From: Octopus sinensis
Taxonomy: Eukaryota
Direction of reading: 5' to 3'
NCBI RefSeq assembly: GCF_006345805.1
Contig: NC_043000.1
Coordinates: 13,516,001-13,580,000, forward strand
DNA: 64,000 nt
The notes beneath the pieces are model-generated. The model had not been told where the DNA came from. It was given only the letters and a program-made list of their open reading frames with translations, and made no database searches. How positions within the stretch are numbered: position 1 is the stretch's first letter; each line of letters starts with the position of its first letter. The position numbers and the translations under genes were made by a program. Positions 1,284-62,401 of the stretch are shown one piece after another.

Positions 1284-1909
1284 CTATGCAGTCATGCAAA
1301 TAAAGGTAATACTTTCTACTCAAGCCTCATATAGTTTTCACAATAAAGGTAACAATTCTCTTATCGATTGTCACCTGTACTTTACCTTCTATACTGTTAA
1401 TAATTATCTCCAAAGCATGAAATATGGAATAAAAGAGGCTGCAGGACATAGCAAGCAAATCACTTATATCATACCATATAATCTTAAATAAAAAAAAAGG
1501 TATGTTAAATAATGCAGTCCTTGATGCACATTGCCTTATCAGAGAGAAAACACACATCATGGTTATCTGCAGAATAAAATATATTTGATCATAATCGTAA
1601 TTCTCATCAGTCATGGTTCATTTTGGGACTAAACAACAACAACAAACAATAGTAGAACTTCTTACCCATGACTCATTTAGTAAGTGCTGACAATAAAGGT
1701 AAATGTACTTTTGTCTCCTACCTGTATATTACATGTTACACTGTTGTCAGTTATTTCTGTACCATCAAACATAGGTTTGATGGTTCTGAAAATATACTTA
1801 TAAATTATAGAAACATGTTTTATTAAAATAACTGGACATCTTCTGTGATGTTAAGCAAAACACAGCCACATACTGGAAAAGGTATATTTTATAATTTTTT
1901 TATATTTAG

Positions 1910-1920
1910 GTTTTACTGAG
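1910..1920 (+). other. Candidate 11-nt microexon GTTTTACTGAG (probably 5' UTR), paralog A
   Basis: T-rich tract + AG (1908-1909), 11 nt, then GTGAGT (1921). The same 11 nt in copy B are followed by GTAAGT. Confidence 0.6.
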
Positions 1921-2186
1921 GTGAGTAGAGTACTACATTCACATTTGTCCCAGGAAACAATCTGCTTGTGTAAACAACAGGGTTTGAACATGAAAAAAAA
2001 CCAATAAAATTAACCCAACACCTTAACCACTGAGCCACCACTAACTTTCCATCTGGAAATACTAAAAGAAAACAAATCGTAAATAATTTCTTTAATACAA
2101 CTAAAATAATTTGATTTTCTGTAATGAGAGATATCTATGAATAGGTCACTTCAAAGGAGACTGGTGGCTTTAATACCTTTCTAAAG

Positions 2187-2575
2187 AACTCTTTACTCTT
2201 TACTCTTTTACTTGTTTCAATCATTTGGCCATGCTGGAGCACTGCCTTTAGTTGAGCAAATCGACTTCACGACTTATTTTTTGCAAGCCTAGTACTTATT
2301 CTATCGGTCTCTTTTGCCGAACTCCTAAGTTACGGGGACATAACACATCAGCATCGGTTGTCAAGTGATGATGGGGAACAAACACAGACACACAAACATA
2401 AATACACACACACACACACACATATATATGACGGGCTTCTTTCAGTTTCTGTCTGCTGAATCCACGCACAAGGCTTTGGTTGGCTCGAGGCTACAGTAGA
2501 AGACAGTTGCCCAGGTGGCACGCAGTGGGACTGAACCCAGAACCATGTGGTTGGTAAGCACAGCCACTCCTATGC
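2187..2575 (-). mobile_element. tRNA-derived SINE, family A (CORE-like, possibly octopus OR2-type)
   Basis: Same tRNA-like head, central domain and (AAAGAGT)n tail as about 20 other copies or fragments. Examples: 12886-13060, 13570-13950, 18786-19125, 20950-21340, 34945-35325, 39120-39520, 49562-49950. Confidence 0.9.
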
Positions 2576-2764
2576 CTATAGAAATATAAATGAAATGGAA
2601 CTATGATTAATAACAAACATGAATTGAAACCTTGAGGCACCTTTCATACATCTATGTGAAATACTCCATACCACAAAATGAAACATACATAGCAATATAC
2701 CAAATATACATTATACCAATATACTCAACATGTACATCACGAAAACTATGAAATATACAGCTAC

Positions 2765-2765
2765 G

Positions 2766-2820
<55 letters not shown>

Positions 2821-2932
2821 TACATATATATACATTCATATACATACATATACATACATATATATACATATATATACATATATACACACACACACACATA
2901 TATATATATATACATACATATATATATATATA

Positions 2933-2971
<39 letters not shown>

Positions 2972-2984
2972 TATATATATGCAC

Positions 2985-3017
<33 letters not shown>

Positions 3018-3050
3018 CATATAATATATACATATATGTATATATACTAT
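2765..3050. repeat. (TA)n/(CA)n compound microsatellite; similar tracts at 3770-4260 and many other sites
   Basis: Direct reading of the sequence. It accounts for the YI-repeat ORFs in the track. Confidence 0.98.
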
Positions 3051-3236
3051 TATAGTGAGCATATATACCACTGTATCAAACATATACACCACTATACTAA
3101 ACATGCATTTCGCTTTACCAAATATATGTACTACTACACCCAACATATATATACTGCTGTACCAAAACACAACTTCCACTATGCCAAACACCCAAACCAC
3201 AGTATCATAGTGATCCTTGTTCTCTTGTGAATATAG

Positions 3237-3336
3237 TTTTCAACAACCAAAACGAAAAAATTCCAATAAATTCAATAAGTGAGATATTCCAATACCAAAA
3301 ACATTCCTCAAAGACAATGCAACCATTGCAACAGAG
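3237..3336 (+). other. Candidate first coding exon of paralog A: 5' UTR plus ATG at 3317 encoding MQPLQQ(R/S), phase-2 donor
   Basis: Acceptor ttgttctcttgtgaatatAG; donor AG|GTGAGT at 3337; A at -3 of the ATG; no upstream ATG in the exon. Indels versus copy B fall only upstream of the ATG. Confidence 0.55.
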
Positions 3337-3792
3337 GTGAGTGTATAGATAGTTGGGGTGGGTGTTGTAGAATAGTGAAAACAGCAAGGAGTGAGGTTTA
3401 AAGTCAGCTAAAACATGGTTACTACACTTGCAGCTTTATTGTCAGGTGTTTCACTATTAATTGTCTAATCTGTTTAAATATGTTGCATGTGAGTGCAGAA
3501 TTGATTTTGTCACTTGTAACAGCAACAGAAAGTATAATGTTGTCTTACTGACAGTTAGAGAGAAAAATCTATCAACAGCAATGATATATAGCTACTATAA
3601 CGAGAGAGAGATGTTCTTGTAGTTGGGTTTGGCTTTTTTCTCCACCCCACTTTTTTTTCTATTCTTTTACTATTAAAGTTGACTCCTGAGGCATGGCAAT
3701 CTAAAATCTTAAGTCATCACATGATTCATATACATGTTTTTTTGTATTCCACATCTATGCATTTTCTATGACTGTGTGTATATGTGTGAATA

Positions 3793-5007: not shown

Positions 5008-6029
5008 AATAATGCTTCACAGGGTCAAGGGTAACTGGCCCAAGAGAGTACCTATGTTTGCTAATAACCACAAAGGAATCTAAATCATGACATGTTACCA
5101 AGCCATACTCAATTGTGAGTGACAAATGGCTTGTATCATCGAAGATTAGTTGCTCATTTTCTTCACTATAGAGAGAACAGCTTGAACAGAATACAATTGA
5201 TCTACCCTAATTTGCATAATGGTGCAGTTGCTGACAGCATGAATTAATTAATAAATTGAAGCACTACATAACATTCTAGATAAACTGGGATATGATATAA
5301 AATTGCAGTATATGTTTATAGCAATCATGTATTTATAATAGCTTTGCCGTGCAAAGTAGATGGTGGGAGTTAAAGCAGAGGTCAATTTTGTCTTTTGTGA
5401 AGGTAAATAGCCTAATGGTTAGACTATTCAGCTCATGCTTATAAGTTTGTGGGTTCAATTCCTGAACTGAGCAGCAAGATATGTCCTTGAGCAACACACT
5501 TCATTTCACATTGAGTCATGCAATCCAGCTTTAGCCCTTTAGTATTTAAACTGGCCAATCCAGTCAAAATATTCCATCTGTTTTATGTTCAAACTGATCA
5601 GATCCAAGCTCTCACACCTACCCTACAAAGTTATTCTACATTAAATGATCACAGCATCAAGAGCTTGATGATATGAGATAATGCATGATTAATTCAAATC
5701 AATGTGAATCAATAACCATTACGTTTGATAGAATAATCGGACCTCTAAAGGGTTAAATGAGTGCCAGGCAGTTACTGGCGCAGCCCTCACTTCCTCAAGC
5801 TGTTGAATCTTAAATGGTCTGCTGAGTCAATGGTAAGGGTTACGACTACATTACTAAACCATACTCCTTAGTTTTTCATTTTCCTGACCATAGGGAAAAG
5901 AGTTATTTATAGATACTTATTGCATAGCTTAGATCAGTGCTCTGCAATCGGTATGCTGTGGTACACTGGTGTGCCACAAGACGATGCTAGGTGTGCCACA
6001 GTGTAACCTGAATATAATTTTAATCTCTA

Positions 6030-6345
6030 TACTTTTAGTACCCTCTTTTACGGTATGTCGCCAATCTCTACGGTTGCTGGCAACTGCTTCCCAGTTGCTA
6101 ATATTGATGTTGCAGGCCTTCATGTCCCTTTTGCAAACATCCTTGTATCGTAAGAACAGTCTTCCCACAGACCTAGTGCTCCTAGCAAGCTCTCCGTAGA
6201 GTATGTCCTTGGGGATTCTGCCATCTTCCATACGGCTAACATGTCCAAGCCATCTCATACGTCTTTGTGTGAGGAGTGCAAACATGCTTGATATTCCTGT
6301 TTGCTTGAGGACATCTTTGTTGGGGACATGATTCTGCCATTTGAT
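6030..6345 (-). mobile_element. RTE-BovB-like LINE ORF2 C-terminal fragment (inverted part)
   Basis: Translation LGIKWQNHVPNKDVL...RRMRWLGHVSRMEDGRIPKDILYGEL...RYKDVCKRDMK...WRHTVKEG is typical of the RTE ORF2 C-terminus. Confidence 0.92.
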
Positions 6346-6369
6346 GCCAAGGGAACACAAAGGAATGAC

Positions 6370-6531
6370 AGAGAGAGAGAGGAAAAATGGAAAGACAAGA
6401 AAAGATGTCAACAAGAAACTGTGACATTACAACCAGCCAGGCAAAATCTTCACTACATTTACGGCACCTACCAGAGGGAGTGTTTGTCCAGGATAGGACT
6501 ACACAGCCACAGCAGATGTATTAGAACATGA
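6370..6531 (+). mobile_element. RTE ORF2 extreme C-terminus (degenerate zinc knuckle), non-inverted part
   Basis: Translation EREEKWKDKKR...RECLSRIGLHSHSRC* matches the CxSRIGLxSHxRxC end of RTE ORF2. Confidence 0.8.
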
Positions 6532-7087: not shown

Positions 7088-8730
7088 ATCATCATCATCA
7101 TCATCATTTAGCGTCCGTTCTCCATGCTAGCATGGGTTGGACGGTTCAACTGGGGTCTGTGAAGCTGGAAGGCTTCATCAGGCCCAGTCAGATCTGGCAG
7201 TGTTTCTACGGCTGGATACCCTTCCTAACGCCAACCACTCCGTGAGTGTAAGTGGGTGCTTTTTACGTGCCACCTGCACAGGTGCCAGACAGAGCTGGCA
7301 AACGGCCACGAACGGATGGTGCTTTTACGTGTCACCGGCACGGGGCCAGGCGAGGCTGGCAACGGACACGAACGGATGGTGCTTTTACGTGCCACCAACA
7401 CGGGGGCCAGACAGAGCTGGCAAACGGCCACGAGACGGATGGTGCTTTTACGTGTCACCGGCACGGGGGCCAGGCGAGGCTGGCAACGGGCACGAACGGA
7501 TGGTGCTTTTACATGCCACCGACATGGGGGCCAGACAGGGCTGGCAAACGGCCACGAACGGATGGTGCTTTTACGTGTCACCAGCACGGGGGCCAGGCGA
7601 GGCTGGCAATGGACACGAACGGATGGTGCTTTTACATGTCACCGACATGGGGGCCAGACAGGGCTGGCAAATGGCCACGAACGGATGGTACTTTTACGTG
7701 TCACTGGCACGGGGGCCAGACAGAGCTGGCAAACGGCCACGAACGGATGGTGCTTTTACGTGTCACCGGCACGGGGGCCAGACAGAGCTGGCAAACGGCC
7801 ACAAACAGATGGTACTTTTACGTGTCACCGGCACGGGGGCCAGGCCAGGCTGGCAACGAACATGAACGGATGGTGCTTTTACGTGCCACCTACACGGGGG
7901 CCAGACAGGGCTGGCGAACGGCTACGAACGGATGGTACTTTTACGTGTCACCTGCACGGGGGCCCTGATGTTGATCGACCTCATTTGGTTTGATCTTGAT
8001 TTTGACTGTTCTCACGTCTTGCCGGGTTTTCTCATGCACAGCATACCTCCAAAGGTCTCGGTCACTGGTCATTCCTTGGTGAGACCTAAAGTTCGAAGGT
8101 CGTGCTTCACCGCCTCGACCCAGGTTTTTCTGGTCTACCTCTTCCACAGTCCCCTCAACTGCCAGGGTGTGGCACTTTTGCACACAACTATCTTCAGCCA
8201 TTCTCATCACATGACCATACCAGCGCATACGTCTCTCTTGCACACAACAACTGATACTTCTTAGGTTCAACTTTTCTCTCAAGGTACTTACACTCTGTCG
8301 ATTATGAACACTGACATTACACATCCATCGGAGCATACTAGCTTCATTTCTTGCGAGCTTACGCAAATCCTCAGCAGTCACAGCCCAAGTTTCACTACCA
8401 TGTAGCATGGCTGTACGTACACATGCATCACACAGTCTGCCTTTTACTTTGAGCGAGAGGCCTTTTGTCACCAGCAGAGGTAAGAGCTCTCTAAACTTTG
8501 CCCAGGCTATTCTTACTCTAGCAGTTATACTCTCAGCGCACCCACCCCCGCTACTGACTTGGTCACCTAGGTAATGGAAACTATCAACTACTTCTAGCTT
8601 TTCTCCCTGGAAAGTGACGGAAGTTGGTCTCAGAGCATCTTCAGGGTTAATTGTTCCTGAGCATCTGCCACATACAAAAACCATCTTCCTAGTTAGCCTT
8701 CCTTTGACATTGCTGCACCTCTTATGTGTC
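7088..8730 (-). mobile_element. 5'-truncated RTE LINE: RT C-terminal region, 3' UTR with a tandem repeat, and (GAT)n tail
   Basis: ORF 7941-8786 includes LEVVDSFHYLGD, RVRIAWAKFRELLPLL, AMLHGSETW and RRMRWYGHVMRM. The 3' tail is shared with many short copies (e.g. 20425-20700, 24350-24720, 25190-25520, 37860-38110, 51940-52175). Confidence 0.95.
7255..7960. repeat. GC-rich minisatellite with a 60-63 bp unit (about 11-12 copies) in the RTE 3' UTR
   Basis: Unit approximately GGTGCTTTTACGTGTCACCGGCACGGGGGCCAGACAGAGCTGGCAAACGGCCACGAACGGAT, with two largely alternating variants. Confidence 0.97.
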
Positions 8731-9214
8731 CATATATGTAATATATATATTATATATAATATTATCATCATCATCATCATCATCATTTAACATCCGCTTT
8801 CCATGCTAGCATGGGTTGGCTGGTTTGACTGAGATTTGGCGAACCAGACTCCAATCTGATCTGGTAGAGTTTCTACATGTAATAAATAATGTAATATATA
8901 TAATGTAACATTATATGTTATACAGAATATGTATTTATGTATATGCACACACATGCAAGGTGTGTGTATATACATACACACACACACACACTTGCATTTT
9001 GTATGTCTGTGTATATGTATAGGCATGTAAAAAGCACCTGCTACACTCTTGGAATGGTTGGCATTAGGAAGGGTATCCAGCTGTAGAAACCTTGCCAGAT
9101 AAGATTGAAGCCTGCTACAGCCTCCTGGCTTACCATCCTCAGTCATGAGTTGGACAGTTTGACTGAGGCTTTCCAATCTGCATGGGATATATATAGATAT
9201 ATATATATATATAT

Positions 9215-9475
9215 ATAATAATAAATATTAGGGAATAAATCCAAATTTACAGGGAAAAATCAGATTTAGGATTAAATCCAATTTTATAGTAAAATATTAT
9301 ATAATATTAATTAGAGACAAAACCACTATTTTGCAAAACAAACAAGGAAAAACTTAATCAATACATAAAATTTTAATAAAATTTTAATAAAAAGTAAAAA
9401 AATAAAATTTTATGTATTGATTAAGTCTTTCCTTGTTTGTTTTGCAAAATAGTGGTTTTGTCTCTAATTAACATT
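9215..9475. mobile_element. AT-rich repeat family (possibly Penelope-like UTR) ending in a fold-back palindrome; other copies at 15130-15390 and 22624-22955
   Basis: Shared body AATAAATATTAGGGAATAAATCCAAA...TTAGAGACAAAACCACTATT. Inverted arms at about 9309-9375 and 9403-9469. Flanked by (TA)n. Confidence 0.75.
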
Positions 9476-9940
9476 ATATTATATATATATATATACATAT
9501 AAAGAAAAATACACACAAAAGTTATTACATAGTTTATGTATTTAATAATATATATATATATATTATATATATATATAGAAAGAGAGATTGACATACAGAT
9601 AAATATAGGTAGATATAGATACAGACATATAATCTGTACTCAAGGGCAGTTACTAGAATATATGTATTAAATGAGGGATTTTGTGAGAATAACAACTGAT
9701 ATAGAAACACCCTAAGACATCATGCAATCACTTTGACTGCACAAAAACTGCATGAGATCCAACCGGGTCAAAATCATCAATTTTTAGTTTAATTGTTAAA
9801 CACATAATAATGTTTAAGGGGTATTATAAATACATGTATAGAATTAATTAGTTCATATGTTCTGTTATTGTATGTTACATATATCATGTTCAATCAATGT
9901 TAAATTTACACCACTGGAATAATATATCCTGAATATTGAC

Positions 9941-12864: not shown

Positions 12865-13963
12865 AATAACATATATCATATATAAAGGCGCAGGTGTGGC
12901 TGTGTGGTTAGAAGCTTGCTTCCCAACCACATGGTTCCAGATTCAGTCTCACTGTGAGGTACCTTGGGTAAGTATCTTCTACAGTAGTTTCAGGCTGACC
13001 AAAGCCTTGTGAGTGGATTTGGTAGACAGAAACTGAAAGAAGCCCATCGTATATATATATATATATATTATATATATAGCATCATCATCATCATCGTTTA
13101 ACATCTGCTTTCCATGCTAGCATGGGTTGGACGATTTGACTGAGGTCTGGCAAACCAGATGGTTGCACCAGACTCCAATCTGGTTCGGCAAAAGAGACTG
13201 ATAGAATAAGTACTAGGCTTACAAAGAATAAGTCCTGGGGCCATTTTGTTCTATTGAAGGCGGTGCTCCAGCATGGCTGCAGTCAAATGACTGAAACTAG
13301 TAAATGAATAAATTGTTGAATAAATTTAACTCCATCCTGTAAGTTACATTAAGTGTGTAGATACTCTGCAGTTATATTTATTTTGTGTGGAGTCTTGTTT
13401 GGATGTCAGGTCTCTTATCTTTCATTGAAAAATTTTCCTATATATATATAAATATATATGCGCATGTGTAAGTATGTAAATACATACACTCACACACACA
13501 CTCATATATACATGCACACTCACACATACACACACACAGATATATATACATACACGCAGATATATATTCTTTTATTCTTTTTATTTTTTTATGTTTCAGT
13601 CATTTGACTGTGGCCATGCTGGAGCACCGCCTTTAGTCGAACAAATCGACCCCAGGACTTATTCTTTGTAAGCCTAGTACTTATTCTGTCAATCACTTTT
13701 GGTGAACTGTTAAGTTACAGGTACGTAAACACACCAACATTGGTGGGGAGACAAACACAGACACACAAATTTACACACAAACACACATATATATGATGGG
13801 CTTCTTTCAGTTTCCATCTACCAAATCCACTCACAAGGTTTTGTTCAGCCCGAGGCTATAGTAGAAGACACTTGCCCAAGGTGCCACATAGTGGGACTGA
13901 ACCCAGAACCATGTGATTGGTAAGTAAGGTACTTACAACCCAGCCATTCCTGCAACTATATAT

Positions 13964-14321: not shown

Positions 14322-14785
<464 letters not shown>

Positions 14786-15018
14786 GGATATATATATAAT
14801 TTAAAAACACAAGTAAAGTTTAAAATCCAGGTGTGTTCATTTTTATACATATGCTATACTTGGAACCATTCTGCAGTTGGATCTATAGTTTATATTGGAT
14901 TGGGTACATATGTAGATATATTATTATATATATATATATATTAGAAGAAATAAGGTACTCAGAAATCGGATGGTTGTACATTTACAGATTTTATTAATAT
15001 GTCACATGTTTTTATAAA

Positions 15019-15071: not shown

Positions 15072-15399
15072 TTCTTTTTTCTAATATACAATACCTCTAC
15101 ATCACCTCCAAACCTTCTAAAATATATATATATATATATATATATAATAAATATTAGGGAATGAATCTAAAATTACAGGGAAAAATCAGATTTAGGGTTA
15201 AATCCAATTTTATAGTAAAATATTATATAATATAATTCGAGACAAAACCACTATTTTAAAACCAAACAAGGAAAGACTTAATCAATACATAAAATTTTAA
15301 TATAAATTAAATAAATATTTAATTTATATTAAAATTTTATGTATTGATTAAGTCTTTCCTTGTTTGGTTTTAAAATAGTGGTTTTGTCTCGTATTATAT

Positions 15400-15437
<38 letters not shown>

Positions 15438-16101: not shown

Positions 16102-16536
16102 ATTGTTCTTTTCTTTCATAATTACATTGATACCTTCAGTTAAATTGTTTTATCTTTAGTTTTCTTTCACTGCTGGAAGTTTCCTGAAATATTGCTCGCC
16201 CCCCCCCACACACACACACACTTCACCCCCACCCCATACCACTTTCCTTCACACACTGTTAAACATCCACAGCACATACACATGCACATAAACATACACA
16301 TACAAACACACACGCACGCATACAAATATATACATATATGCATGCAGGAGCCTGCTAGCTGGATGTTCTCTGACTCACACTTTTCACTGCACTCACCCTT
16401 CTTCCTGTATTATTCTAACCCCCTTTAACTACACCTAACCACCTCTCCAATGACTGCCACCACCCCACCACCACCACCACCACCACCACCACCACTGCTG
16501 CCACCATCTCCGCCACCTCCACTACCACCATCATAG

Positions 16537-16812
16537 TTACCATCACCGCCGCCGCCGCCACTGTCAAGTGCTGCCACCATTGCCGCTACCACTGCCACTA
16601 CTACTCACCATCCTTACCGCAAGCTCCAGCACTACCATACAGCATCCATAACCCCCACCAGCTAATTGAACCATACCCGGATGTGATGGCTATTAAGCCA
16701 GAAGAGCCAATGAAAGCTTCATCAGAAAGCAACATCTCTCCAACAGCTGCTGCAGTTTCATACTGCAGCAGTTGCACAGCAGCCAATCATGTCGCATGTT
16801 ATTGATTATAGT
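16537..16812 (+). CDS. Candidate 276-nt phase-0 coding exon (Pro/Ala/Thr/Gln-rich) that needs two compensating 1-bp homopolymer corrections
   Basis: Acceptor ...ccaccatcatAG (16535-16536); donor GTGAGT at 16813. The corrected reading is LPSPPPPPLSSAATIAATTATTTHHPYRKLQHYHTASITPHQLIEPYPDVMAIKPEEPMKLHQKATSLQQLLQFHTAAVAQQPIMSHVIDYS. As given, that frame has stops. Confidence 0.35.
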
Positions 16813-18105: not shown

Positions 18106-18330
18106 AGGCAGCGAGCTGGCAGACACGTTAGCGCGCCGGGCGAAATGCTTAGCGGTATTTCGTCTGTCGTTACGTTCTGAGTTCAAATTCCGCCGAGGTC
18201 GACTTTGCCTTTCGGGATCGATAAATTAAGTACCAGTTTCGCACTGCGGTCGATGTAATTGACTTAATCCGTTTATCTGCCCTTGTTTGTCCCCTTTATG
18301 TTTAGCCCCTTGTGGGCAGTAAAGAAATAT
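18106..18330 (+). mobile_element. tRNA-derived SINE, family B (central domain TCGACTTTGCCTTTCATCCTTTCGGGGTCGATAAATTAAGTACC)
   Basis: Colinear copies at 28105-28268, 28745-28968, 43605-43800, 53355-53801 and 59340-59520 (minus). Confidence 0.9.
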
Positions 18331-19918
18331 ACATCTCTTTATTACAATTAATTTTTGAATATTATGAAAATTTACAAAAGTAACTGCTTCAATTATTAAG
18401 CTGGTGTTTGAATTAACATGAAATGTTGATGGTAGGATTAATTTAGATAACTTTGAAACAGAAAGTATATATCATAGAATCAGGGGACAGTCTCAAGTGA
18501 GTTGGTATCAAAAGGATTAAACAGAGCACAGAGGTGTTCCAGCATGACTGCAGCCGCATGACTGCAGCCGCATGGCTGAAATGAGTAAAAGAATAAAAGA
18601 AATACAGCCCTGACTACATTTATTATAAATAATAAAATTATGAATAATGGATAGGATTTGAAGAGGTTATAGTCCCATGTCCAGAAAATTCACTGTAAGA
18701 AATTTCACCGCATAAGAAAATTTACCATTAGACAAATCCACTGTAAGCATTATTATGTCAGCATTTTCTTAGATAAAAAAATTAATGATAGGTAAGTAGC
18801 TTGCTTACCAACCACATGGTTCCGGGTTCATTTCCACTGCATGGCACCTTGGGCAAGTGTCTTCTACTGTAGCCTCGGGTTGACCAAAGCCATGTGAGTG
18901 GATTTGGTAGACGGAAACTGAAAGAAGCCCGTTGTATATATGTATATATATGTATGTATGTGTGTATGTTTGTGTGTCTGTGTTTGTCCCTCCAAACATC
19001 GCTTGACAACCGATAGAATAAGTACTAGGCTTACAAAGAATAAGTCCTGGGGTCGATTTGCTCGACTAAAAGCAACGCTCCAGCATGGCTGCAGTCAAAT
19101 GACTGAAACAAGTAAAAGAGAGAAATAAAACCATTAAATAGGTAAGCCATTATTCAACATCAAACATTAAAAAAAAAACATAATGAGGTCATTTAAATGA
19201 AGTTTCTTGAAGTGAACATTTCTACAACCAAAACGTTTATGGCGAAATTTCCTATAACCTTATAATCCAAGCTATGTTCTCATGGAGCACGTGACTTTCG
19301 TATCTTTGTTTGAAGAATTATGGATAGGAGATTCCATACATGTTTTTTTTTTTTCTACATGTATTCCTTTGAAACTCCTGGCTTGTAATAGAACACATGT
19401 AAAATGGAATTAGAAATACACAATTATTCCAGTCTTTTGTTTAGATATGAATAATGCATATATATTTTTGTATTTATTCACGTGTCTATCTATCTGCTAA
19501 TCTATCGATCTACACACGCACATGCATGCACATGTACTCATACAAACATATGCACATACGCATGCATATATACCTATAAACATTAAAAATAATTCATCCT
19601 TAATACTCGTAGAAACAATGACACACAGACATATATGTGTGTGGGTGTTTTTATGTATGTATGCATATGTCTGCGTGTGTGCATGCAAGCGTATATTATA
19701 GAGACACAGATTTCATCTATGAATGCAGTTGAGAAATTATAGGAGTTCAATCCAGCACATGCACATTATTTAGTTTCTACACATGTGAAACTAGTAACTG
19801 CGACAGAAATTTATTTTCAACACTGACCACAAATGTACATATACATACATTTATATATATATATATATATATAATATATATATATATATAGAGATAGATA
19901 GATAGATAGATAGATAGA

Positions 19919-20394: not shown

Positions 20395-21168
20395 TACACA
20401 CATACACACACACACATATAAACATCATCATCATCGTCGTCATCATTGTTTAACATCCGCTTTCCATGCTGGCATGGGTTGGATGGTTTGACTGAGGGCT
20501 GGCGAGCCAGAAGGCTGCACCAGGTCCCAATCTGATCTGGCAGCGTTTCTACAGATAGATGCCTTTCCTAACATCAACCACTCTGAGAGTGTAGTGGGTA
20601 GTCAGGCCAGACAGGCGGTACTGGCATTGACAAGGCTCAAATGGTGCTTTTTATGTACCACTGGCACAGGAGCCAGTCAGGTAGCACTGGCAACAACCCC
20701 ACTCAAAGGATGTTTTTTACATGCCACATACATATATATAAGTTTCTTTATTGGCCACACAGGGCTGCACACAGATGGGACAAGTTACAAGGTAGAGCTT
20801 TTCTTTTGGGGGATGAAAAAAACAAAAAACAAAAGAAACAAAAAAAAAAAGTGGTGGCATAGGTTTCGATCAAGAGGGATCGTAAAAGGGAAGAAAAGAA
20901 CAAAAAAAAAATTAATAAAATAAAAAAATAAAAAAATAAAAATAAAAAAATTTCTCTTTTGTCTTTTATTTGTTTCAGTCATTAGACTGTGACCATGCTG
21001 GGGCATCGCCTTAAAAAATTTCTAGTTGGATTGACCCCAGTACTAATTTTTTCGTTCAAACCTGGTACTTTTTTATTGGTCACTTTCGACAAACCATTAA
21101 ATTATGGGGACATAAACACACCAACACCAGTTGTCAAGTGGTGATGGAAGACAAACACAGACACAAAG

Positions 21169-22545: not shown

Positions 22546-23408
22546 CAGAGAACATGATTACGGATTTATATTACTGAACCCTCATTTGTTATTCACAATG
22601 AGAGAATCCATCATATATATATATATTAAATTAGAGATAAAACCACTATTAGGCAAATCATACAATGAAAAACTTAAGCCAATACATAAGATTATTTAAT
22701 TTATATTATTTAAATATATAACAAAATTATTAAAAAAATATAATTAATAGTAATTATATTAATTTTGTTATATATTTAAATAATATAAATTAAATAATCT
22801 TATGTATTGGCTTAAGTTTTTCATTGTATGATTTGCCTAATAGTGGTTTTATCTCTAATTTAATATTATATAATATTTTACTATAAAATTGGATTCAATC
22901 CTAAATCTGATTTTTCCCTGTAAGTTTGGATTTATTCCCTAATATTTATTATTAATATATATATATATATATATATACAAAATGGACAAAATGACTCTTA
23001 AGAGTAGCATTAATTCTCTAGGTCAGTCAATCTTTCTCAACCAATCAATGGGCTGATTGACTAAACTAATCAATAACGAAGCTATAATGACTACAGGAAA
23101 CAGCTGTAAATCAAATTTGCTATGATGGGGAACTATATAATGACCATTATTTACACCTTGTCTTGTATATCACTCTGTGTAAAAAATACTAATATAACTG
23201 CGAACTCAAATATAGATTTACAATATAGAATGGTGATGAACAACAACCTCAGGTCCTGCCTCCAGAATATTTGGAATTCTTTATTAATCTAAACAATATT
23301 GTTAACCTGGTATACTAACACAGAACATTAAAGTATTTTGCCTGGGGAGATAATCCCTCATTAATAATAATATTTTATATTCATATATATATATATATAT
23401 AATAATAT

Positions 23409-23489: not shown

Positions 23490-24352
23490 ATAGGGTGCAA
23501 TGGATAAACTGCTGCTATTTTATATTTTTAATTTCATGCATGCATATTGTTTTTGATTTTGTCAACTACACAGTATAGTAGGGTCAGTTAGGCATCGTCT
23601 GTGAGAAAAACAGTATCATGACACAGTTCACTCTACCAGAAATTTGGAAACAACATGCTGTACTGCTTGGCATTCACACCAGAAGCTCCAATATGAACAT
23701 TTCGGAGTGTTTGGGTGTCAATCTGAGGACACTGCAATCTGAGGACATGTACCAAGAGTGATAAAAATCAAATATCCAGTGTTTGCAGCAATCACTATGG
23801 TGATGTTATGCCTCCATTCATCTTCCCACACAATCTCAGACTTAACATGGAGGCCTACATCAAGTGCCTGGAGGAGGTAGTATTGCCCTGGGTCAAGACG
23901 ATAGCTGCTTAGAGACCCCGTGTCTGGCAACAGGACTCTGCACCATGCCACACAAGGAGGAGAACCAGTCAGACAATTTCTGTGACCACATCACCTCAGA
24001 CATCTGGCTACTTAACTCTCCAAACTGCAACACCTTTGATTATTATGTGTGGGGTGCAGTTGAGCGAGAGACCAACAAAATTCCTTGTAATAACAAAGAT
24101 GAACTGAAGGCAAAGATTATGGCAGCATTCACCAACTTAAACATGGAGACCACCCAGAAGAGTTGCAGGAGATTCCTAAGTCGTCTGGAGGCTGTGGTCG
24201 AAGCCAATGGCGATTTTATTGAATAAATTTACTCTTTAGTATTTCAAGATATTTTTATGTAATTTTGGTAAGTATATCTATTAAAATACGATATCGGTGT
24301 TATTTTCATTTTTGTGTAATTTAGACTACAATATATTCCCCACACCTTGTAT
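23490..24352 (+). mobile_element. Internally deleted Tc1/mariner element (maT/DD37D-like transposase fossil)
   Basis: WQQDSAPCH, then NSPNCNTFDYYVWGAVERE...RLEAVVEANGDFIE*. Degenerate TA-CAGGGTG-type ends. A 16-bp duplication lies at the apparent deletion junction (about 23719-23750). Confidence 0.85.
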
Positions 24353-25154
24353 AGGTTCCTACATCTGGATGCCCTTCCTAATTCCAACTACTCCAAGAGT
24401 GTAGTAGTTGCTATATACCTGTCACTGGTATGGGAGCCAGTCAGGTGGTACTGGCATTGACCACGCTCAAATGGTGCTTTTTACATGCCACCAGCATGGG
24501 AGCCAGTCAGGGAGCACTGGCATCAACCACATTTGGATGGTGCCTTTTACGTGCCACTGGCATGGGAGCCAGCCAGGGGGGGTACTGGTATCAACCACGT
24601 TTGCATGGTGCCTTTTATGTACCACTGGCTGGGTCTTCTTAATCACAGCATATCTCCAGAGGTCTCAATCTCTTGTTATTACCTCTGTGAAGCCCAACAT
24701 TCGAAGGTCGTGCTGACAGGAAACTGCATCCAGTTGTGACACTCCAGTTCGTAAGTTCTAGAGTTGTGGGAAGCATCGTGTCATCCTTTAATTACCATTA
24801 CTCCCAGGTCCATACTGTCTTGGAAAGATTGTACTGGCCAGGGTCCTATCCGTGGGGGTTAAATAAATTTCCCATGGATAGAAGTGGCTTCTGCTGTTGT
24901 TGAGGAAACTGCAAGGGATGTAGCTTTTTTGGGGAGAAAGATACTCTGATATAATATTTGCAGTCAAACTATCAAAAGAGTGCCAGTCATCTTACAATGC
25001 TTATCACTGGAACCTACTATGGTGGTAAAAGTGTTGTTCAAGCTTTTGCCATTTTAATCCAGTGGCATACAGATGTCTCACTAATTTGAGATTGGTAACA
25101 TCTGACAAGATAACACAATCATCATACATACACATACACACACGTGTGTGTGTG

Positions 25155-26289: not shown

Positions 26290-26785
26290 AACAATTAAGG
26301 AACGGCCATAATAGGCCATTCACCCACTAGAAATAACAGCCAAAGCTTCTACCGCAAATAAAGATTAATTCCGTAAACAGGAGAAAATTAAAAAAAACAT
26401 TTACCCTGTAATTTCTTGTACGGTATACCGTTTCATCCTCTGTTTAATGGTAAACTAACCTGATTAAATTAAATCAAGCCAATCCTCCATAAGCCCTCGG
26501 ATTCTTCAGCAAGAAATAGCTCAAGTCGGGACAGATATATACACGAGGCATACCCAATCTTGCCAAGTCAATATCTGACCTAAAATTTTCAAATCGTCGC
26601 ACTCGCGCCAAATTTATCGGCAGCAAATAGATATCAGCCGTCGATTCCATTACGGAATTAACCAAAAAATTCATAATTAATCAATATAGGGTGGCAAGGA
26701 AAATTTTGTAGAATTTTATTGCCACCTGGTGGCAATAAAATTCTACAAAATTTTCCTTGCCACCCTATATTGATTAATTATGAAT
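26290..26785. mobile_element. Unclassified CpG-containing element ending in a palindrome with 58-bp arms (about 26669-26785)
   Basis: Arms centred on T26727; GGTGGCAA/TTGCCACC nested in each arm; (TA)n on both sides. Confidence 0.55.
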
Positions 26786-27479
26786 ATATATAATATATAT
26801 ATATATACACACACGCGCGCACACATATACATAATTTTTCATATATGTATATGTAAATGTGTATAGATATTTACATCTCTCTCTGTCCATATATATGTGC
26901 ACATGTATCTATCTCTTTCTCTCTGTCTCTGTATATATATATATATATATGTATGTACGTATGTCTGTATGTATGTATGTGTGTGTGTGTTTATATGTGA
27001 TTTTGTGTTTGTGAGTATACACTCATGGACACACACACTTATACAGAAGACACACATAAACACATGTATGAAATACATAAACACATGTATATTGAATCAT
27101 GTGACTACTTAAGACTTGGATAGCCTCAGGAATCAACTTTACAAAACAGAAAAAACTAATACAGAAACAAACAAACAAAAAAGCCAAACCCAACTACAAG
27201 AACATCTCTCTCTCGTTATAGTAGCTATATATCATTGCTGTTGATAGATTTTTCTCTCTAACTGTCAGTAAGACAACATTATACTTTCTGTTGCTGTTAC
27301 AAGTGACAAAATCAATTCTGCACTCACATGCAACATATTTAAACAGATTAGACAATTAATAGTGAAACACCTGACAATAAAGCTGCAAGTGTAGTAACCA
27401 TGTTTTAGCTGACTTTAAACCTCACTCCTTGCTGTTTTCACTATTCTACAACCCCCACCCCAACTATCTATACACTCAC

Positions 27480-27581
27480 CTCTGTTGCAATGGTTGCATT
27501 GTCTTTGAGGAATTTTTTGGTATTGGAATAATTTCTCACTTATTGAATTTATTGGAATTTTTCCGTTTTGGTTGTTGAAAA
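27480..27581 (-). other. Candidate first coding exon of paralog B (102 nt; ATG at 27499-27497; MQPLQQ(R/S))
   Basis: Acceptor and GTGAGT donor (27479-27474) are identical to copy A. One 3-bp and one 1-bp indel, both 5' of the ATG. Confidence 0.55.
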
Positions 27582-28036
27582 CTATATTCACAAGAGAACA
27601 AGGATCACTATGATGCTGTAGTTTGGGTGTTTGGCAGAATGGTAGTTATGTTTTGGTACAGCAGTATATATGTTGGGTGTAGTAGTATGTGTATTTGGTA
27701 AAGTGAAATACATGATTAGTATAGTGGTGTATATGTTTGGTACAGTGTTATACATGCTTACTATAATGGCATGTGTGCTTTGTATGTTGGTATGTATATC
27801 TGGTATAATGGCATGTGTGTTTTATATAGCAGTGTAAATGTTTTTGGCATATTGATATATATACATACATATTTGGCATATCTGTATATTTGTTCGGTTT
27901 AATAGTATACATATTTGGTATAGTGGTATGATATATGTTCAGTTTAGTGGTATACATGTTTGAAAAGGTGGTAAACATGTTCACTATAATGGTATGTATG
28001 CTTGATACAGCAGTATAAATGTTTTTGGCACAATGG

Positions 28037-28069
<33 letters not shown>

Positions 28070-29648
28070 TTGACATTGTGGTATGTTTGTTTGGTTTAGT
28101 GGTATACATGTTTTCAAATTCCGCCGAGGTCGACTTTGCCTTTCATCCTTTCGGGGTCGATTAGATAAGTACCAGTTACACACTGGGGTTGATATAATCG
28201 ACTTAATCCGTTTGTCTGTCCTTGTTTATCCCTTCTTTGTGCAGCCCCTTGTGGGCAGTAAAGAAACAGGTATATATGTTTGGTACAATGGTGTACATGT
28301 CTGAAAAAGTGGTATATATGTTCACTATAATAGTATGTATATTTGGTATAATGGTATATATGTTTGAGATTATGATATCTATGTTTCATATAGTGATGTA
28401 TATATTTGCTGTACTTGATAAGACATGTCAAGCTCAGTAAAATTGCTGTCTTCCATACATACAAACTTGTCCTTTCAGGAGCTGGTGCCACATAAAACAC
28501 ACCTGTGTGGTGCTGCATAAACAAACCCATGCCAGTGGCACATAATTAGCACCCAGCACACTCTGTTAAGTGGTGGGCATTAGGAAGGGCATCCAGCCAA
28601 AAAAACCATGACACAACAGACAATTGGAGTCTGGACAGTTTCCCCAGCTGGCTAGCTCCATGTCAAACCGTCCAACCCATGCCAACATGGAAAACATACA
28701 TTAAACGATGATGATGATAATGATGATAAAGTTTGGATAAGGTTTGGCGGCAAGCTGGCAGAAACGTTAGCACGCCAGGTGAAATGCATAACTGCATTTC
28801 GTCTGCCGCTACATTCTTAGTTCAAATTCCGCCGAGGTCAACTTTGCCTTTCATCCTTTTGGGGTCGATAAATTAAGTACCAGTTATGTACTGGGGTCGA
28901 TGTAATCGACTTAATCCGTTTGTTTGTCCACTCTGTGTTTCGCTCCTTGTGGGTAGTAAAGAAATAGATGATAAGGTTTGGAATAGAGGCATGTATATTT
29001 CATATAATGGTCTATATGTTTGGTATAGTAGCATATATGCTCTGCATATTGGTTTAGTTGTGTGTATACTCAGTACAGTGGAATGCATGTTTGGCTTAGT
29101 AGTATATATATATGTTTATGATAATGGTATGATATATGTTTAGTATAGAGGTACAAGTGTTTGGTATAATAGTATGTGTGCTGCTGTAGTCGAATCTATG
29201 TACACAAAAGTAGTATATATATTCATTACAGTGGCATATTTGCTTGGTATCGTGCTATGTATGTTTCATCATGTGGCATGGAGAATTTCATGTGGTGATA
29301 TGAAATGTGCATCCAAGTTTTCATTCTTCTCTATTATCAATCATGGTTTCATTTCACTTGTATTACTAATGATCTTTGGAAAGCTACTATTATTCTCTGA
29401 AGTGGTACATTCATAGATGACTCTCATTACAAACAATCAAATTATTTTAGTTATCATATTTCTCATTTGTATCGAGAAAACATTTATGATTTGTTTTCTT
29501 TTCACATTTCCAGATGGAAAGTTAGTGACTCAGTGGTTAAGATGTTGGATTAATTCTATAGGTTTTTTTTTTCATGTTCAAACCCTGTTGTTTACACAAG
29601 CAAATCGTTTCCTGGAACAAAGGTTAATGTAGTACTCTATCTACTTAC

Positions 29649-29659
29649 CTCAGTAAAAC
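29649..29659 (-). other. Candidate 11-nt microexon, paralog B
   Basis: Minus strand reads ttttttttttatttAG|GTTTTACTGAG|GTAAGT. Confidence 0.6.
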
Positions 29660-30283
29660 CTAAATAAAAAAAAAAAATCATAAAATGTACCTTTTCCAGT
29701 ATGTGACTCTTTTGGTTGGCATCGCAAAAGATGTACAAGTATGTGTCTACAATTTATATGTATATTTACAGAACCATCAAATTCATGTTTCATGGTATGG
29801 AGATAATTGATGGCAGTATAACAGGTAAGATACAGGTAGGGACAAGAGTCAACACTAAATGAGGTATGAGTAAAAAACAGAATTCCAATTAGTAGTAGTA
29901 GTAGTATTACTTTTTCTTCTTCTTCTTCTCTTCTTCTTCTTCTTCTTCTTCTTCTTCTTCTTCTTCTTCTTCTTCTCTTCCGCCTCCTTCTTCTTCTACT
30001 TTTTCTTCTTCTTTAGTCCCTAGTCAGCCATGCTGATTAGAATTACGATCCTGATCAAAGATATTTATTCCACAGATGACCATCTTGCTCTTTCTTTCTC
30101 TGTTCCCAACCATTTGTGCAGCACCTTGGGCAAGTATCTTCTACTATTGCCCTGGATCAACCAAAGCACTGTGAGTGGATTTGGTAGACGGAAACTGAAA
30201 GAAACCTATTATATATATATATACTTTTTTATATGTATGTATGTATGTATATGTATGTATGTGTATGCGTATATGTATGTATG

Positions 30284-32396: not shown

Positions 32397-33077
32397 ACCA
32401 CAGGGATCCATCCTATCACTCCTACTTTTCAGCCTATATTTTCATCACTACATCCCCACACTTCACATAGCAGATACAAACAGCCTCATAAACAGATGAT
32501 ATAAGCACTCAAATATACCTTCTATTCTCCAAACATTGTTATACAACTTCTCCAATCCTACCTAAGCCACCAAGAAACCTAGTTCCCTTTTCATTTCTCT
32601 TCATACCACATATCTCTTCAACACCACAGAACATCAAATACAAGCAACAACATGAAAGGACACCTTACAAACACACACACACCGATAGAGAGACCGATAG
32701 AATAAGTACTAGGCTTACAAAGAATAAGTCCTAGGGTCGATTTGCTCAACTAAAGGCGGTGCTCCAGCATGGCAGCAGTCAAGTGACTGAAACAAGTAAA
32801 AGAGTAAAAGAGTTAGTCAAATATTTATCCTGCAGTTGCTTCGCAAGGAACTGAATGTAGCACTCTGTCTAAAATGCTTTCTCCAAATCAACAAAAGCAG
32901 GAATAATAGTTTATTCTTAGCCAAGATTTTCCCTCCAGTGGCTTCACTAGGAGATGAAACCAAACTGCATATCATCTAGGTGTGTATTGGATAAAAATTT
33001 ATTTTCAATTTTTATAAAACTGCTTGCATTTCTCTCTCCATGACTTTCATAACATAGTCCGGTAGTCTCTATAGTTA

Positions 33078-33481
33078 TTCTTTTACTCTTTTACTTGTTT
33101 CAGTCATTTGACTGCGGCCATGCTGGAGCACCGCCTTTAGTCGAGCAAATCGACCCCGGGACTTATTCTTCGTAAGCCCAGTACTTATTCTATCGGTCTC
33201 TTTTGCCGAACCGCTAAGTGACGGGGACATAAACACACCAGCATCGGTTGTCAAGCAATGCTAGGGGGACAAACACAGACACAGAAACACACACACACAT
33301 ATATATATACATATATACGACAGGCTTCTTTCAGTTTCCGTCTACCAAATCCACTCACAAGGCATTGGTCGGCCCGGGGCTATAGCAGAAGACACTTGCC
33401 CAAGATGCCACGCAGTGGGACTGAACCCGGAACCATGTGGTTGGTTAGCAAGCTACTTACCACACAGCCACTCCTGCGCCT
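33078..33481 (-). mobile_element. Young full-length SINE family A copy
   Basis: CpGs are intact and it is nearly identical to 49562-49950, apart from a short deletion there. Confidence 0.95.
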
Positions 33482-33855
33482 ATTTTAAGAGTTGCTTCTC
33501 TTTAATGCATTTTCTTTGCCTTTGCAGAAGTTTATGATGATATTGCTAAACTAGTCCTGTATAACTTGAGTAACAATTCTTTCACATATTCAAGCAGAGT
33601 TCCCCCTCTTCATACAACTGGCAAACAACAAAAAACACCAATACCAGTGTTACCCTACTAACACCATTAATGTACAAATATATCAGTCAACAAGGAAGCC
33701 TGTATGTGGCCACCTGCTAGCAATAACTGCCAAATCTCCCTCCAATCACACCATTTTTTAAAGAAAAAAAAACATTTTTTTAATAGTTATTGTAGTCCTA
33801 TTTATACTAAACTAATCAGGGTGAAAGAGCAAATAGTCAAGAGTGGAATATTTTT

Positions 33856-33950: not shown

Positions 33951-36544
33951 GGAGTTAAACAGAAACAATGACAACAGACGTCATCAGCATCACCACCATC
34001 ATCATCATCGTTTAACATCCACTTTCCATGTTGGCATGGATTAACAGGAGCTGGCCTGGCAGAAGACTGCACCAGACTTCTGTGTCTGTTTTGGCAAGGT
34101 TTTTTATGGCTGGGTGCCCTTCCTAACACCAACCACCCTGCAGAGTGGACTCAGTGCATTGTAAGTGGCACCAGCACAAGTGAGGTCAGTTTTGGCATGG
34201 TTTTTTACAGCTTTCAAATGCCAACCACTTTACAGTGTGGACTGGGTGCTCTTTATGTGACACCTTGTTTCAGTCACAGTCCTGTGGCCATGCTGGGGCA
34301 CAGTTTATTAAAGTTTACCCAAACAAATCGACTCCAGTTTCTGTCTACTAAATTCTCACACAAGACATTGGTCAACCTTAGGGGTTATATAGTGGAAGAC
34401 TGAGATTCTGAGCTGTGGGACCAAACTTGAAACCATTTCTTTGCAAAGTGAACTTCTTCACCTCATATCCATGCCTTGCACTGATAAATAAGCATACAGA
34501 CACAACACCACACCACACCATAAATACCTGATATTACTGCAACACCACCACCATCACAGTTAAACATTCAGCAACATCAGAACAATCTCATATAATTCAA
34601 CCATCACAGCAAGACTACCACATTACAACATCGCAATAGTACCACTCACTACACACACACCACAACCACCACCACCACCACCACCACCACTGCCAACATC
34701 ACCAACATCACTGCCACCACCACCATTGCCACTGCCGCCACTACCACTTTTGCCACCACCATCACCACCTCTGCCGCCACCATCACCATCACCCTCACCA
34801 GCATCACAGTACCTCATCACTATATTCTATTATTGCCATCAATCATACCAAAAAAGAAACCATCTATATAATCGTTTCCTTGCAAGAAATAGCAGCCAAA
34901 TCTCCCTCAAATAACATCCTACAATTTTTTAACAAAAGACGTTCTTTTATTCTTTTATTTGTTTTAGTCATTTGACTGCGGCCATGCTGGAGCACCACCT
35001 TTAGGTGAACAAATCAACCCCAGGACTTATTCTTTGTAAAAGCCTAGTATTTATTCTATCAGTCACTTTTGCTGAACCGTTAAGTTACGGGGACGTAAAC
35101 ACAGCAACATCAGTTGTCAAGCGATGGAGGGAGAACAAACATAGACACATACATATAAATATATACATATATACGTCAGGCTTCTTTCAGTTTCCATCTA
35201 CCAAATCCACTCACAAGGCTTTGGTCGGCCCAAGGCTATAGTAGAAGATACTTGCCCAAGGTGCCACGCAGTGGGACTGAACCCGGAACTATGTGGTTAG
35301 TAAGCAAGCTATTTACCACACACCCAAATGCAGTCCTTTGTTTCTTGCATGTAAGAAAAAAAGATAGGATGGTCACAGATGGATTGCCTTATTGCCTCTG
35401 ATCACAGATCTGCTAAATCAGAACTGACCTGTAGCAAAGCAACAACAACAGTAACAGCAACAACAACAACAACAACAACTACCAATAGTACAATGCTTTC
35501 CTTCTCATCTCCATTTCACACAGGCCCCCCCCTCTACAATTGCAACTACCATCACTATTTCCATTATCATTCTCAACTCAGCCCACCACCACCACCACCA
35601 ACAACAACACCAACATCCCTTCCACTATCATCATCATCATCATCATCATACCTTTCTCCCACCACCACTACCACTACCACCACCACCGACACCATCACTT
35701 CAATCACCACTACTACCACTCCTTGCAAGAGGAAGCAATAAAAGTACTATAGCTTGGGTGGGGACCAACCACACTAATGTGTGTGTGTGTGTGTGTGCAT
35801 GCATGCGTGTGTGTGTGTGTGTGTGTGCGCGTGTGTGTGTGTGTGTGTGTGCGTGTGTGTGTGTGCCTGCATGAGTGTCCATGCATTTATGTATGTATAT
35901 GTGTGTATTAATGCATTTATGTGTGTGTGTGAGTGAGTGAATGTGTCAATGCATCTGTGTGTGTTTGTATGTGCGTGTGTGTGTGTGTGTGTGTTATGTT
36001 GTGTGTGTGTTATGTTGTGTGTGTGTTATGTTGTGTGTGTGTGTGTGTGTGTGGTGTGAATGAGGAGGAAAAGCAGCAGCAAGAGTAAGTATGAGCAGCA
36101 AATCTTTTTCATCTCTCTCTTTCTTTTTCCTCTCCCCCTCTCTCTTTCTTTCACACACTCTCTCTCTCTCTATCTCTCTCTCTCTCTCTCTCCACCGCCA
36201 CCACCACCACCACCCCCACCCCCACCGGCCACCCGGAGGTCAGAGGTGAGAGGTGAGCAATGGATAACTTGTCAGCTGCTTCATATATTTTGGTATGTGG
36301 CCTGGTTTCAAAAGGGTTATTTAGCTGTTTCCTCTTGCTTTTTCTTTCTTTTATATATATATATATATATCTTGTTTCTTTTTTTTATTATTTATTTTCT
36401 TGTGTTTTACCTCTAATGCTTAGGGTGCATAGAAGAGTGACTTTGGGGTGTGTGTGTGTGTGTGTGTGGATCGGGGAGGGGGGGTTGAGGAAAGGGTTAG
36501 GGGGTTTTGAATAGCTGCTTGGTGGAAGATTGCAGAGGGCTGTG

Positions 36545-36745: not shown

Positions 36746-37324
36746 CATATATACACCCATGAATATGTAAACTACACACTCAGATACACAGGGTACACAA
36801 AGAAACATGCATACATACACACCACACATACATGCAGACAAACAAACATGCAGGCACACACACACACACACACATATACAAACACTATTTACCAACAACT
36901 CAACTATCCACATCAACACACACAAACACACACACACAAATAAACATGCAAATACACATACACACAAATGCAAACAAAAGCAACACACACACACATATAC
37001 AGATACCAACACAACTAAACACCTATTTCTCTCTCTCCCCCTCTCTCCCCCCTCTCTCACACACACACACACACACACAAAAGCTCTTATGTGTGTGTCT
37101 TGATGGACAAAGTTCAGAACAAAGGTGATGATGCTGGTGCTTTTGTGAATTGAAATAAGTTCTACAAATAAATAGGTCCTTTATATTCAAACACAAATCT
37201 CCATGTATATGATGAAGACAAGCAGGCCGAAACTTTGAAGTCAGTGTCAGCTCTCTTGTAAAAGTTCAATAAACATGTGTGGCTGTGTGGTAAGAAGCTT
37301 GTTTCCCAAATTGAGTTCCTTTTG

Positions 37325-37855
37325 AACATTGGGCCTCATGGAGGTAAAGTGGCTGTGTTCCTCTCGAGTGTTGGGCCAGGCGGAGGCAAGGTGGCTGAGT
37401 TCCTCTCAACTGTTGTGCCTGGCGGAAATCAAAGTGGCTGAGTTCCTCTCAAACATTGGGTCTGATGGAAGAAAAGTGGCTGAGTCCCTCTAAAACGTTG
37501 GGCCTGGCGGAGGCAAAGTGGCTGGGTTCCTCTCAAGCGCCGGGCCTGATGGAAGAAAAGTGGCTGAGTCCCTCTAAAACGTTGGTCCTGGCGGAGGCAA
37601 AGTGGCTGGGTTCCTCTCAAACTTTGGGCCTGATGGAAGCAAAGTGGCTGAGTTCCTCTCAAACTTTGGGCCTCATGGAGGCAAAGTGGTTGAGTTCCTT
37701 TTGAGTGTTGGGCTTCAAGGAGGCAAGGTGGCCGAGTTCCTCTCGAGCACTGGGCCTCACAGAGGCAAAGTGGATGAATTCCATTTCAGTGTTGGGCTTC
37801 AAGGAGGCAAGGTAGCTGAGTTCCTCTCGAGCATTGGGCCTCATGGAAGCAATAA
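37325..37855 (+). repeat. 42-bp minisatellite (about 12 units) upstream of an RTE-type 3' tail
   Basis: Unit approximately GGGCCTCATGGAGGCAAAGTGGCTGAGTTCCTCTCAAGCATT, translating as GPHGGKVAEFLSSI. The period was checked at 37611 and 37653. Confidence 0.95.
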
Positions 37856-62224: not shown

Positions 62225-62262
62225 GCCACCACCACCACTACTGCTACTGCTGCTGCTGCTAC

Positions 62263-62293
<31 letters not shown>

Positions 62294-62370: not shown

Positions 62371-62401
<31 letters not shown>

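Follow-up and report, generated by a model that had tools for sequence, protein, structure and literature searches.

A near-identical island between the arms of an old inverted duplication in Octopus sinensis, probably a gene-conversion tract

The window, a 64,000-nucleotide stretch of Octopus sinensis DNA dense in transposable elements and microsatellites, contains two inverted arms that lie 23 kb apart. Outside one short block, 10–18% of sites differ between the arms and indels are many; inside it, 337 bp are identical but for a single base. How can so small a segment be almost identical in arms that have otherwise drifted apart? The feature is real, statistically unambiguous and a further instance of a well-known kind. 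We read the block as a recent, possibly recurrent tract of ectopic (non-allelic) gene conversion between the arms of an old inverted low-copy duplication, with a probability of about 0.7, a reading based on one haplotype of one assembly.

Arms, spacer and near-identical block

The block is held in a collinear inverted duplication consisting of arm A (approximately 1540–3788) and arm B (approximately 30102–27034), which measure about 2.2 kb and 3.1 kb, respectively. The parts of the two arms, in window coordinates, are as follows.

1540–2142, plus strand: arm A outer segment 1, inverted match to 30102–29409
2143–2578, no strand assigned: SINE-like insertion of 436 bp, present in arm A only; the site is uninterrupted in arm B
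2579–2703, plus strand: arm A outer segment 2, matching 29368–29244 with 82% substitution identity
2767–3046, no strand assigned: (TA)n microsatellite of arm A (Tandem Repeats Finder); arm B has an expanded 21-bp minisatellite there
3049–3203, plus strand: arm A left flank, degenerate 21–22 bp minisatellite units, matching 27767–27615
3204–3302, plus strand: near-identical extension in arm A, pairing with 27614–27514
3303–3639, plus strand: arm A copy of the block, the putative conversion tract, 337 bp with one mismatch
3320–3339, plus strand: candidate start exon of the initial annotation, ATGCAACCATTGCAACAGAG, seven codons, followed by GTGAGT
3640–3788, plus strand: arm A right flank, first a T-rich run with many indels and then unique sequence, strongly diverged from its match at 27176–27034
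3789–27033, no strand assigned: spacer of 23.2 kb, not duplicated, rich in transposable elements and microsatellites
27034–27176, minus strand: arm B counterpart of the right flank, from the alignment to arm A
27177–27513, minus strand: arm B copy of the block, from the alignment to arm A
27514–27767, minus strand: arm B extension (27514–27614) and minisatellite flank (27615–27767), from the alignment
27768–29243, no strand assigned: arm B-specific material of about 1.5 kb, the expanded 21-bp minisatellite and transposable-element fragments
29244–30102, minus strand: arm B outer segments, counterparts of 1540–2142 and 2579–2703

The core of the duplication, 3049–3788 against 27767–27034, aligns at 90.4% identity over 748 columns. 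Together with the outer pieces (1540–2703 against 30102–29244), it places collinear paralogous sequence on both sides of the block, as gene conversion between the arms requires. Outer segment 1 has a substitution identity of 87%, measured on 1707–2142 and 29849–29409, where 53 substitutions fall in 415 aligned sites. It carries a tRNA-derived SINE head common to both arms, with the A box TGGCTCAGTGG on the minus strand, and a search with nhmmer over the window returned no copy of this segment besides the arm A/arm B pair. At the arm ends, homology fades out and has no sharp termini, while in the spacer no collinear inverted similarity was detected, even by sensitive blastn.

Both arms have since acquired material of their own. 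The SINE-like insertion at 2143–2578 postdates the duplication, and its portion 2193–2568 is 80–86% identical to six or more further copies within the 64 kb. This family, about 400 bp in length, is seen in at least six copies with 79–92% identity, at 2193–2568, 13572–13953, 18791–19120, 33075–33490, 34942–35326 and 49556–49950. The 21–22 bp minisatellite, with a unit of approximately ACATATATACCACTGTATCAA, occupies 3049–3203 and 27613–29279 directly upstream of the tract, and has mostly been replaced by (TA)n in arm A. In the arm B-specific region, Tandem Repeats Finder reports periods of 21, 45 and 63 bp and nhmmer matches minisatellite units across 27784–29279. Within the same region, 28113–28966 has repeat matches to 18107–18329 and 53352–53806.

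Direct comparison and alignment agree that, read on the plus strand, 3303–3639 is 27177–27513 in reverse complement except for one mismatch in 337 bp. The initial annotation had placed this near-identity at 3304–3639 and 27177–27512, with this very mismatch, and is borne out with coordinates correct to within one base. The sole mismatch is T at 3363 and G at 27453 (GGGTGGGTGTTG versus GGGTGGGGGTTG), and the longest perfect run between the arms, 276 bp, extends from 3364 to 3639. A sharp fall in identity had been described on both sides. It holds on the right, at 3640, but on the left the drop comes 99 bp further out, at 3203. The intervening 3204–3302 pairs with 27614–27514 at 99.0% identity, with one substitution (3255), one 3-bp indel and one 1-bp indel. 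Beyond these limits, the left flank (3049–3203) falls to 89.5%, with 16 substitutions and one indel in 155 bp, and the right flank (3640–3788) to 83%, with 22 substitutions and 11 indel events; its unique stretch at 3676–3735 has about 8–10 differences in 60 bp. The homogenised tract may thus be 436 bp rather than 337 bp if 3204–3302 is counted. Differences are denser in 3204–3302 than in 3303–3639 (Fisher p = 0.038), which hints weakly at more than one conversion event; the extension would then represent an earlier tract, or else belong to the 3303–3639 tract and have been repaired patchily.

The run of identity cannot be chance. When the differences between the arms were permuted, in a Sawyer/GENECONV-type comparison, a perfect run of 276 bp was reached in none of 20,000 permutations and the maximum was 164 bp. 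At the flank rate of 0.17, the probability of one difference or fewer in 337 bp is 5e-26. The Jukes-Cantor distance is 0.152 for all flanks and 0.005 for the 436-bp tract, which would put the age of the tract at about 3% of that of the duplication. Compared to the dispersed repeats of the window, in which the best pair reaches 92.5%, the block with 99.7% exceeds every pair, and nhmmer found its copies within the 64 kb in the two arms alone, with no third. The slippage-prone runs in the tract (A5–A6, G4, (GA)5 and T6) are of equal length in both arms, with the exception of the A5 run at the 3302 edge.

Probable gene conversion and competing explanations

Recent or recurrent gene conversion, one of three options offered by the initial annotation, is the best supported of them, owing to the two-tier divergence, the typical tract length and the equal slippage-prone runs. 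The 337–436 bp observed here fall inside the empirical range of tens of bp to about 1–2 kb. Mammalian conversion tracts measure a few hundred bp and rarely exceed 1 kb, and those of Drosophila have a mean of 518 bp (PMC3961182). The divergence of unique flanking sequence (3676–3735, and the outer segments at 82–87%), together with the insertion private to arm A, indicates that the duplication is old. Since the duplication is old and its unique flanks have diverged, instability of the flanking repeats alone cannot explain the pattern. The equal length of the mutation-prone runs, in turn, argues for recency rather than long-term constraint.

We postulate that a break or gap in one arm was mended by homologous-recombination repair, for which the other arm served as template, either within one chromatid or from the sister chromatid. 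Such repair would have overwritten 337–436 bp of one arm. The heteroduplex probably halted where the sequence becomes non-alignable, at the 21-bp minisatellite on the left and at the indel-rich T-run on the right, both of which are putative barriers. The tract retains about 280–340 bp of perfect or near-perfect homology and is the only plausible site left for recombination between the arms, so that conversion there may be recurrent and self-sustaining. Because recombination between arms that are about 15% diverged is inefficient, repeated events would have kept the tract identical while the rest of the arms escaped. Such repeated upkeep is expected to be needed and is an extra assumption, which counts against the conversion reading, as does the divergence of the left-flank minisatellite, which could be inflated by array turnover. 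An event of this sort is common and probably function-free, and we assign no sequence-specific function to the block. In metagenome and viral contig collections, no exact match to 30-mers of the tract was seen.

The two-tier pattern could also arise if the arms were not one old duplication at all. A young duplication whose repeat-rich flanks diverged fast by slippage and array turnover would find a suitable setting here, as the tract is bounded on its left by the 21-bp minisatellite and on its right by a T-rich run that leads into microsatellites; but the non-repetitive flanks have diverged as well (3676–3735 and 1707–2142), the differences in the minisatellite flank are mostly in-register point substitutions (16 versus one indel), and the transposable element private to arm A belongs to a family with 14–20% divergence among its copies, all of which makes this explanation very improbable. 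Somewhat less far-fetched, and still improbable, is the proposal that the arms are mosaic transposable-element copies, whether independent insertions with a subfamily or exchanged module or the terminal inverted repeats of a large DNA transposon. The window is saturated with transposable elements and the outer arm has a SINE head, but no other copy of the core or the outer segments exists in the 64 kb, where true repeat families have 6–10 copies; the arm ends fade, and no transposase, integrase or polymerase domain was seen in the filtered ORFs between the arms. Moreover, recombination or conversion would have to be invoked all the same to account for the mosaic identity of two copies.

If the duplication is taken as old, the identity might instead be apparent or be maintained by selection. 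An assembly or polishing artefact, in which the arms truly differ and mis-assigned reads homogenised the consensus, is unlikely, though it is the alternative that we would set aside with the least ease. The remaining mismatch at 3363 does sit in a G-rich run, where consensus errors are common; against this, the flanks differ by 10–17% plus indels, so that long reads should be unambiguously assignable to the correct arm, the boundaries coincide with the minisatellite and the T-run and not with read-length-like scales, and arms that are diverged and 23 kb apart are unlike fold-back chimeras. Purifying selection would have to act on a functional element, such as a promoter with first exon and intronic regulator, a lncRNA exon or a small-RNA source, that has been invariant since the duplication. 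In its favour, the block starts near an ATG...AG/GTGAGT motif with a TATA-like sequence about 85 bp upstream, and the near-identical region coincides with the unique sequence that two repeat arrays enclose. Yet to keep 337–436 bp at 99.5–99.7% identity, sharp-edged and amid neutral divergence of about 15%, ultraconserved-like constraint would have to act on every base, the homopolymer and (GA)5 runs not excepted. Searches for a homologue, a Pfam domain, an Rfam family and a structural signal all came up empty for the block, most of which would be intronic under the exon model, and no downstream exons are duplicated. We therefore regard selection as an unlikely explanation, a shade less credible than an artefact.

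Two mobile-element models were tried separately and rejected. A large DNA transposon with long terminal inverted repeats (Polinton/Maverick-like) is at odds with the fading arm ends and with the lack of transposition or replication domains in the filtered ORFs of 3.8–27 kb. A young mobile element inserted independently at the same site in both arms is at odds with homology that stays in register across both edges, and with the lack of a third copy in the window.

Coding and RNA content

The initial annotation had found no long open reading frame in the block, and this stands: the longest frame is 60 aa from start to stop and 75 aa from stop to stop. No Pfam domain was detected in ORFs within the tract, nor in filtered ORFs of at least 55 aa across 1–33 kb. 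A six-frame pseudo-protein of 3150–3700 had no match among 5.8 billion proteins, a weak negative, and a larger pseudo-protein built from the ORFs of 1–33 kb had none either, which is uninformative since LINE and mariner fragments, whose relatives must exist, were also missed. Exact look-ups of the ORFs of the window returned nothing on record. The 75-aa ORF at 3208–3432 on the minus strand had, among 1.84 billion representatives, a match to the unrelated repeat protein P0102 and no other; this match was judged spurious, as it was summed from seven 33-residue stretches at 30% identity.

A second option of the initial annotation, a strongly constrained intronic element next to the start exon, finds no footing in Pfam, Rfam, an unusual fold or duplicated downstream exons. 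Were the exon model right, intron would make up some 300 of the 337 identical bases, and as the duplication does not continue into the spacer, there are no duplicated downstream exons. The ATGCAACCATTGCAACAGAG-GTGAGT motif would be compatible with an exon and is equally expected by chance, which leaves the exon unsupported. A structured RNA (miRNA, snoRNA or other Rfam family) was rejected: across the window, no match attained the gathering score of an Rfam family, the hits obtained near the block at E ≤ 10 were all artefacts in the TA microsatellite outside the tract, and the block folds no better than shuffled sequence (plus strand, z = 0.09; minus strand, z = +1.63).

Within the spacer, the exon candidate proposed at 16537–16812 gained nothing from the domain search, which returned no Pfam domain in 16.4–16.8 kb. 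The surrounding 16419–16805 is GC-rich, with open frames on both strands that are partly low-complexity (poly-Thr/poly-Pro on one strand, poly-Gly/poly-Val on the other). One minus-strand frame in it opens with ATG and runs up to AAGGATG/GTGAGT near 16610, which resembles a good splice donor.

Possible spacer inversion and pairing of the arms, and surrounding repeats

The third option of the initial annotation was repeated recombination between the arms that flips the enclosed spacer as an invertible switch. Part of it stands: the tract is the only arm segment plausibly identical and long enough for homologous exchange, and the inverted arms bracket a unique 23.2-kb spacer, the arrangement from which inverted-repeat-mediated inversion can proceed. 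In mammals, efficient homologous exchange takes about 200–500 bp of uninterrupted identity. The tract offers 276 bp that are perfect, or 337 bp with one mismatch, although the mammalian requirement may not hold for cephalopods. An exchange in the tract that was resolved as a crossover would invert the 23-kb spacer, and a germline inversion polymorphism of 3789–27033 is therefore plausible on the layout of the arms. Two parts of the option find no support. A crossover alone does not homogenise sequence; the conversion that accompanies it does. Since homogenisation comes only via conversion, the near-identity shows that the arms recombined, not that the spacer flipped, and the notion of the crossover as homogeniser is a misconception. 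A regulated switch, moreover, finds no backing in arms that are long and diverged, nor in the filtered ORFs of at least 55 aa across 1–33 kb, which contain no Pfam domain and hence no recombinase domain of the kind that a programmed invertible switch would use.

Pairing of the two arms in RNA had also been suggested, as a possible ADAR substrate. The duplex is physically sound, its computed energy over the 337 bp being −614.5 kcal/mol, and the sequence does come from Octopus; as a substrate, the two arms are a speculative candidate that would require both to lie in one RNA. Across Metazoa, including O. bimaculoides, A-to-I editing acts chiefly on dsRNA that young repeats of low divergence give rise to (Zhang et al. 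2023, PMC9989829). Similar to such substrates (Alu pairs and young repeats), the locus has two low-divergence inverted copies that could pair if co-transcribed. Known substrates, in contrast, are usually nearby repeats in one transcript, whereas the octopus arms are 23 kb apart. A fuller functional model would have the island actively maintained as a hinge or paired control element, in which both arms carry inward-facing promoters and first exons and recurrent exchange at the tract flips the 23-kb spacer (germline or somatic), placing its contents under either arm in turn, or in which convergent transcription yields long dsRNA for ADAR or small-RNA pathways. We consider this model highly improbable, the least credible of all the readings weighed here.

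Close parallels to the locus are found among human inverted repeats. HsInv0209 is flanked by 7-kb inverted duplications at 94% identity; within these, 782 bp reach 99.9%, and homologous exchange, and with it the breakpoint, is considered likely to lie there (Aguado et al. 2014, PMC3961182). As in that human inversion, inverted low-copy repeats surround a unique spacer of kb to tens of kb and include a sub-kb, near-perfect island. Compared to HsInv0209, the octopus arms are shorter (2–3 kb) and less alike (about 85% identity), the island is 337–436 bp, and the locus is known here in one orientation. For palindrome P6 of the human Y chromosome, Hallast et al. 2013 (PMC3723533) describe intrachromosomal conversion between inverted arms and occasional inversion of the spacer. 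The octopus locus resembles P6 in having spacer-separated inverted arms with arm-to-arm conversion as the putative process; it would differ from the Y palindromes, whose whole arms of tens to hundreds of kb are held at more than 99.9%, in that conversion kept a small island only.

Other systems touch on single aspects of the locus. In Drosophila, inversions that arise by staggered breaks duplicate ancestrally unique sequence, inverted, at the ends of the inverted segment (Ranz et al. 2007, PMC1885836). By analogy, a staggered-break inversion is a possible origin of the octopus arms, although this model covers the arms and not the identity island. The site-specific invertible switches Hin/Gin/Cin and the FimB/E invertons likewise have a pair of inverted repeats that brackets a segment. 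Their sites, however, are short and exact, whereas the octopus arms are kb-scale and diverged, with no recombinase domain between or beside them, and lie in an animal genome.

As a whole, the locus is one more example of how short islands of concerted evolution persist in old inverted duplications and mark where the arms can still recombine. As a practical flag, its 23-kb spacer is a putative small inversion polymorphism of Octopus, and assemblies and read mapping can fail at this spot. Were recurrent flipping true, the human pattern of recurrent inversion mediated by inverted repeats would be extended to a mollusc, a modest advance.

Several further repeats are seen in and around the spacer. 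Inward from the inner end of arm B, at a distance of about 250 bp, 26669–26785 is a 117-bp palindrome, 99% self-complementary and centred near 26727, which looks fold-back or MITE-like. An AT-rich fold-back element of about 264 bp at 22613–22876 has arms that are 94% complementary, and related copies occur in both orientations in the spacer (9192–9501 and 15122–15426). At 7255–7964, a GC-rich tandem array is built from 11.5 copies of 62-bp units with higher-order periods of 123 and 247 bp, creating long spurious ORFs on both strands. It is probably an internal repeat of a transposable-element family, and weakly related shorter arrays may occur at 24416–24633 (66-bp units), 20594–20700 and 37312–37852.

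Coding remnants of transposable elements were observed at 48683–49441 (plus), 46890–47282 (minus), 7941–8786 (minus), 5929–6414 (minus) and 23864–24226 (plus). They comprise a LINE endonuclease (Pfam Exo_endo_phos), a mariner HTH_48, two LINE reverse-transcriptase C-terminal-like fragments and a mariner-like transposase tail. The only Pfam domains seen in the window are the LINE endonuclease and the mariner HTH, at 46.9–49.4 kb. The initial annotation had guessed a lineage known for extensive A-to-I editing, and the LINE reverse-transcriptase fragment at 7941–8786 agrees, its best named relatives being from Octopus vulgaris and O. bimaculoides; of the two reverse-transcriptase-like fragments, it is the only one with confirmed Octopus relatives. 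On reading, the ORFs of 33–64 kb look transposable-element-derived. Very long trinucleotide or low-complexity arrays lie at 14322–14789, 41418–42174 and 62061–62647. One of them is (ATG)n, repeated about 157 times, and the remaining two create frames of poly-Ile/Thr/Asp and of poly-Leu/Ser/Thr.
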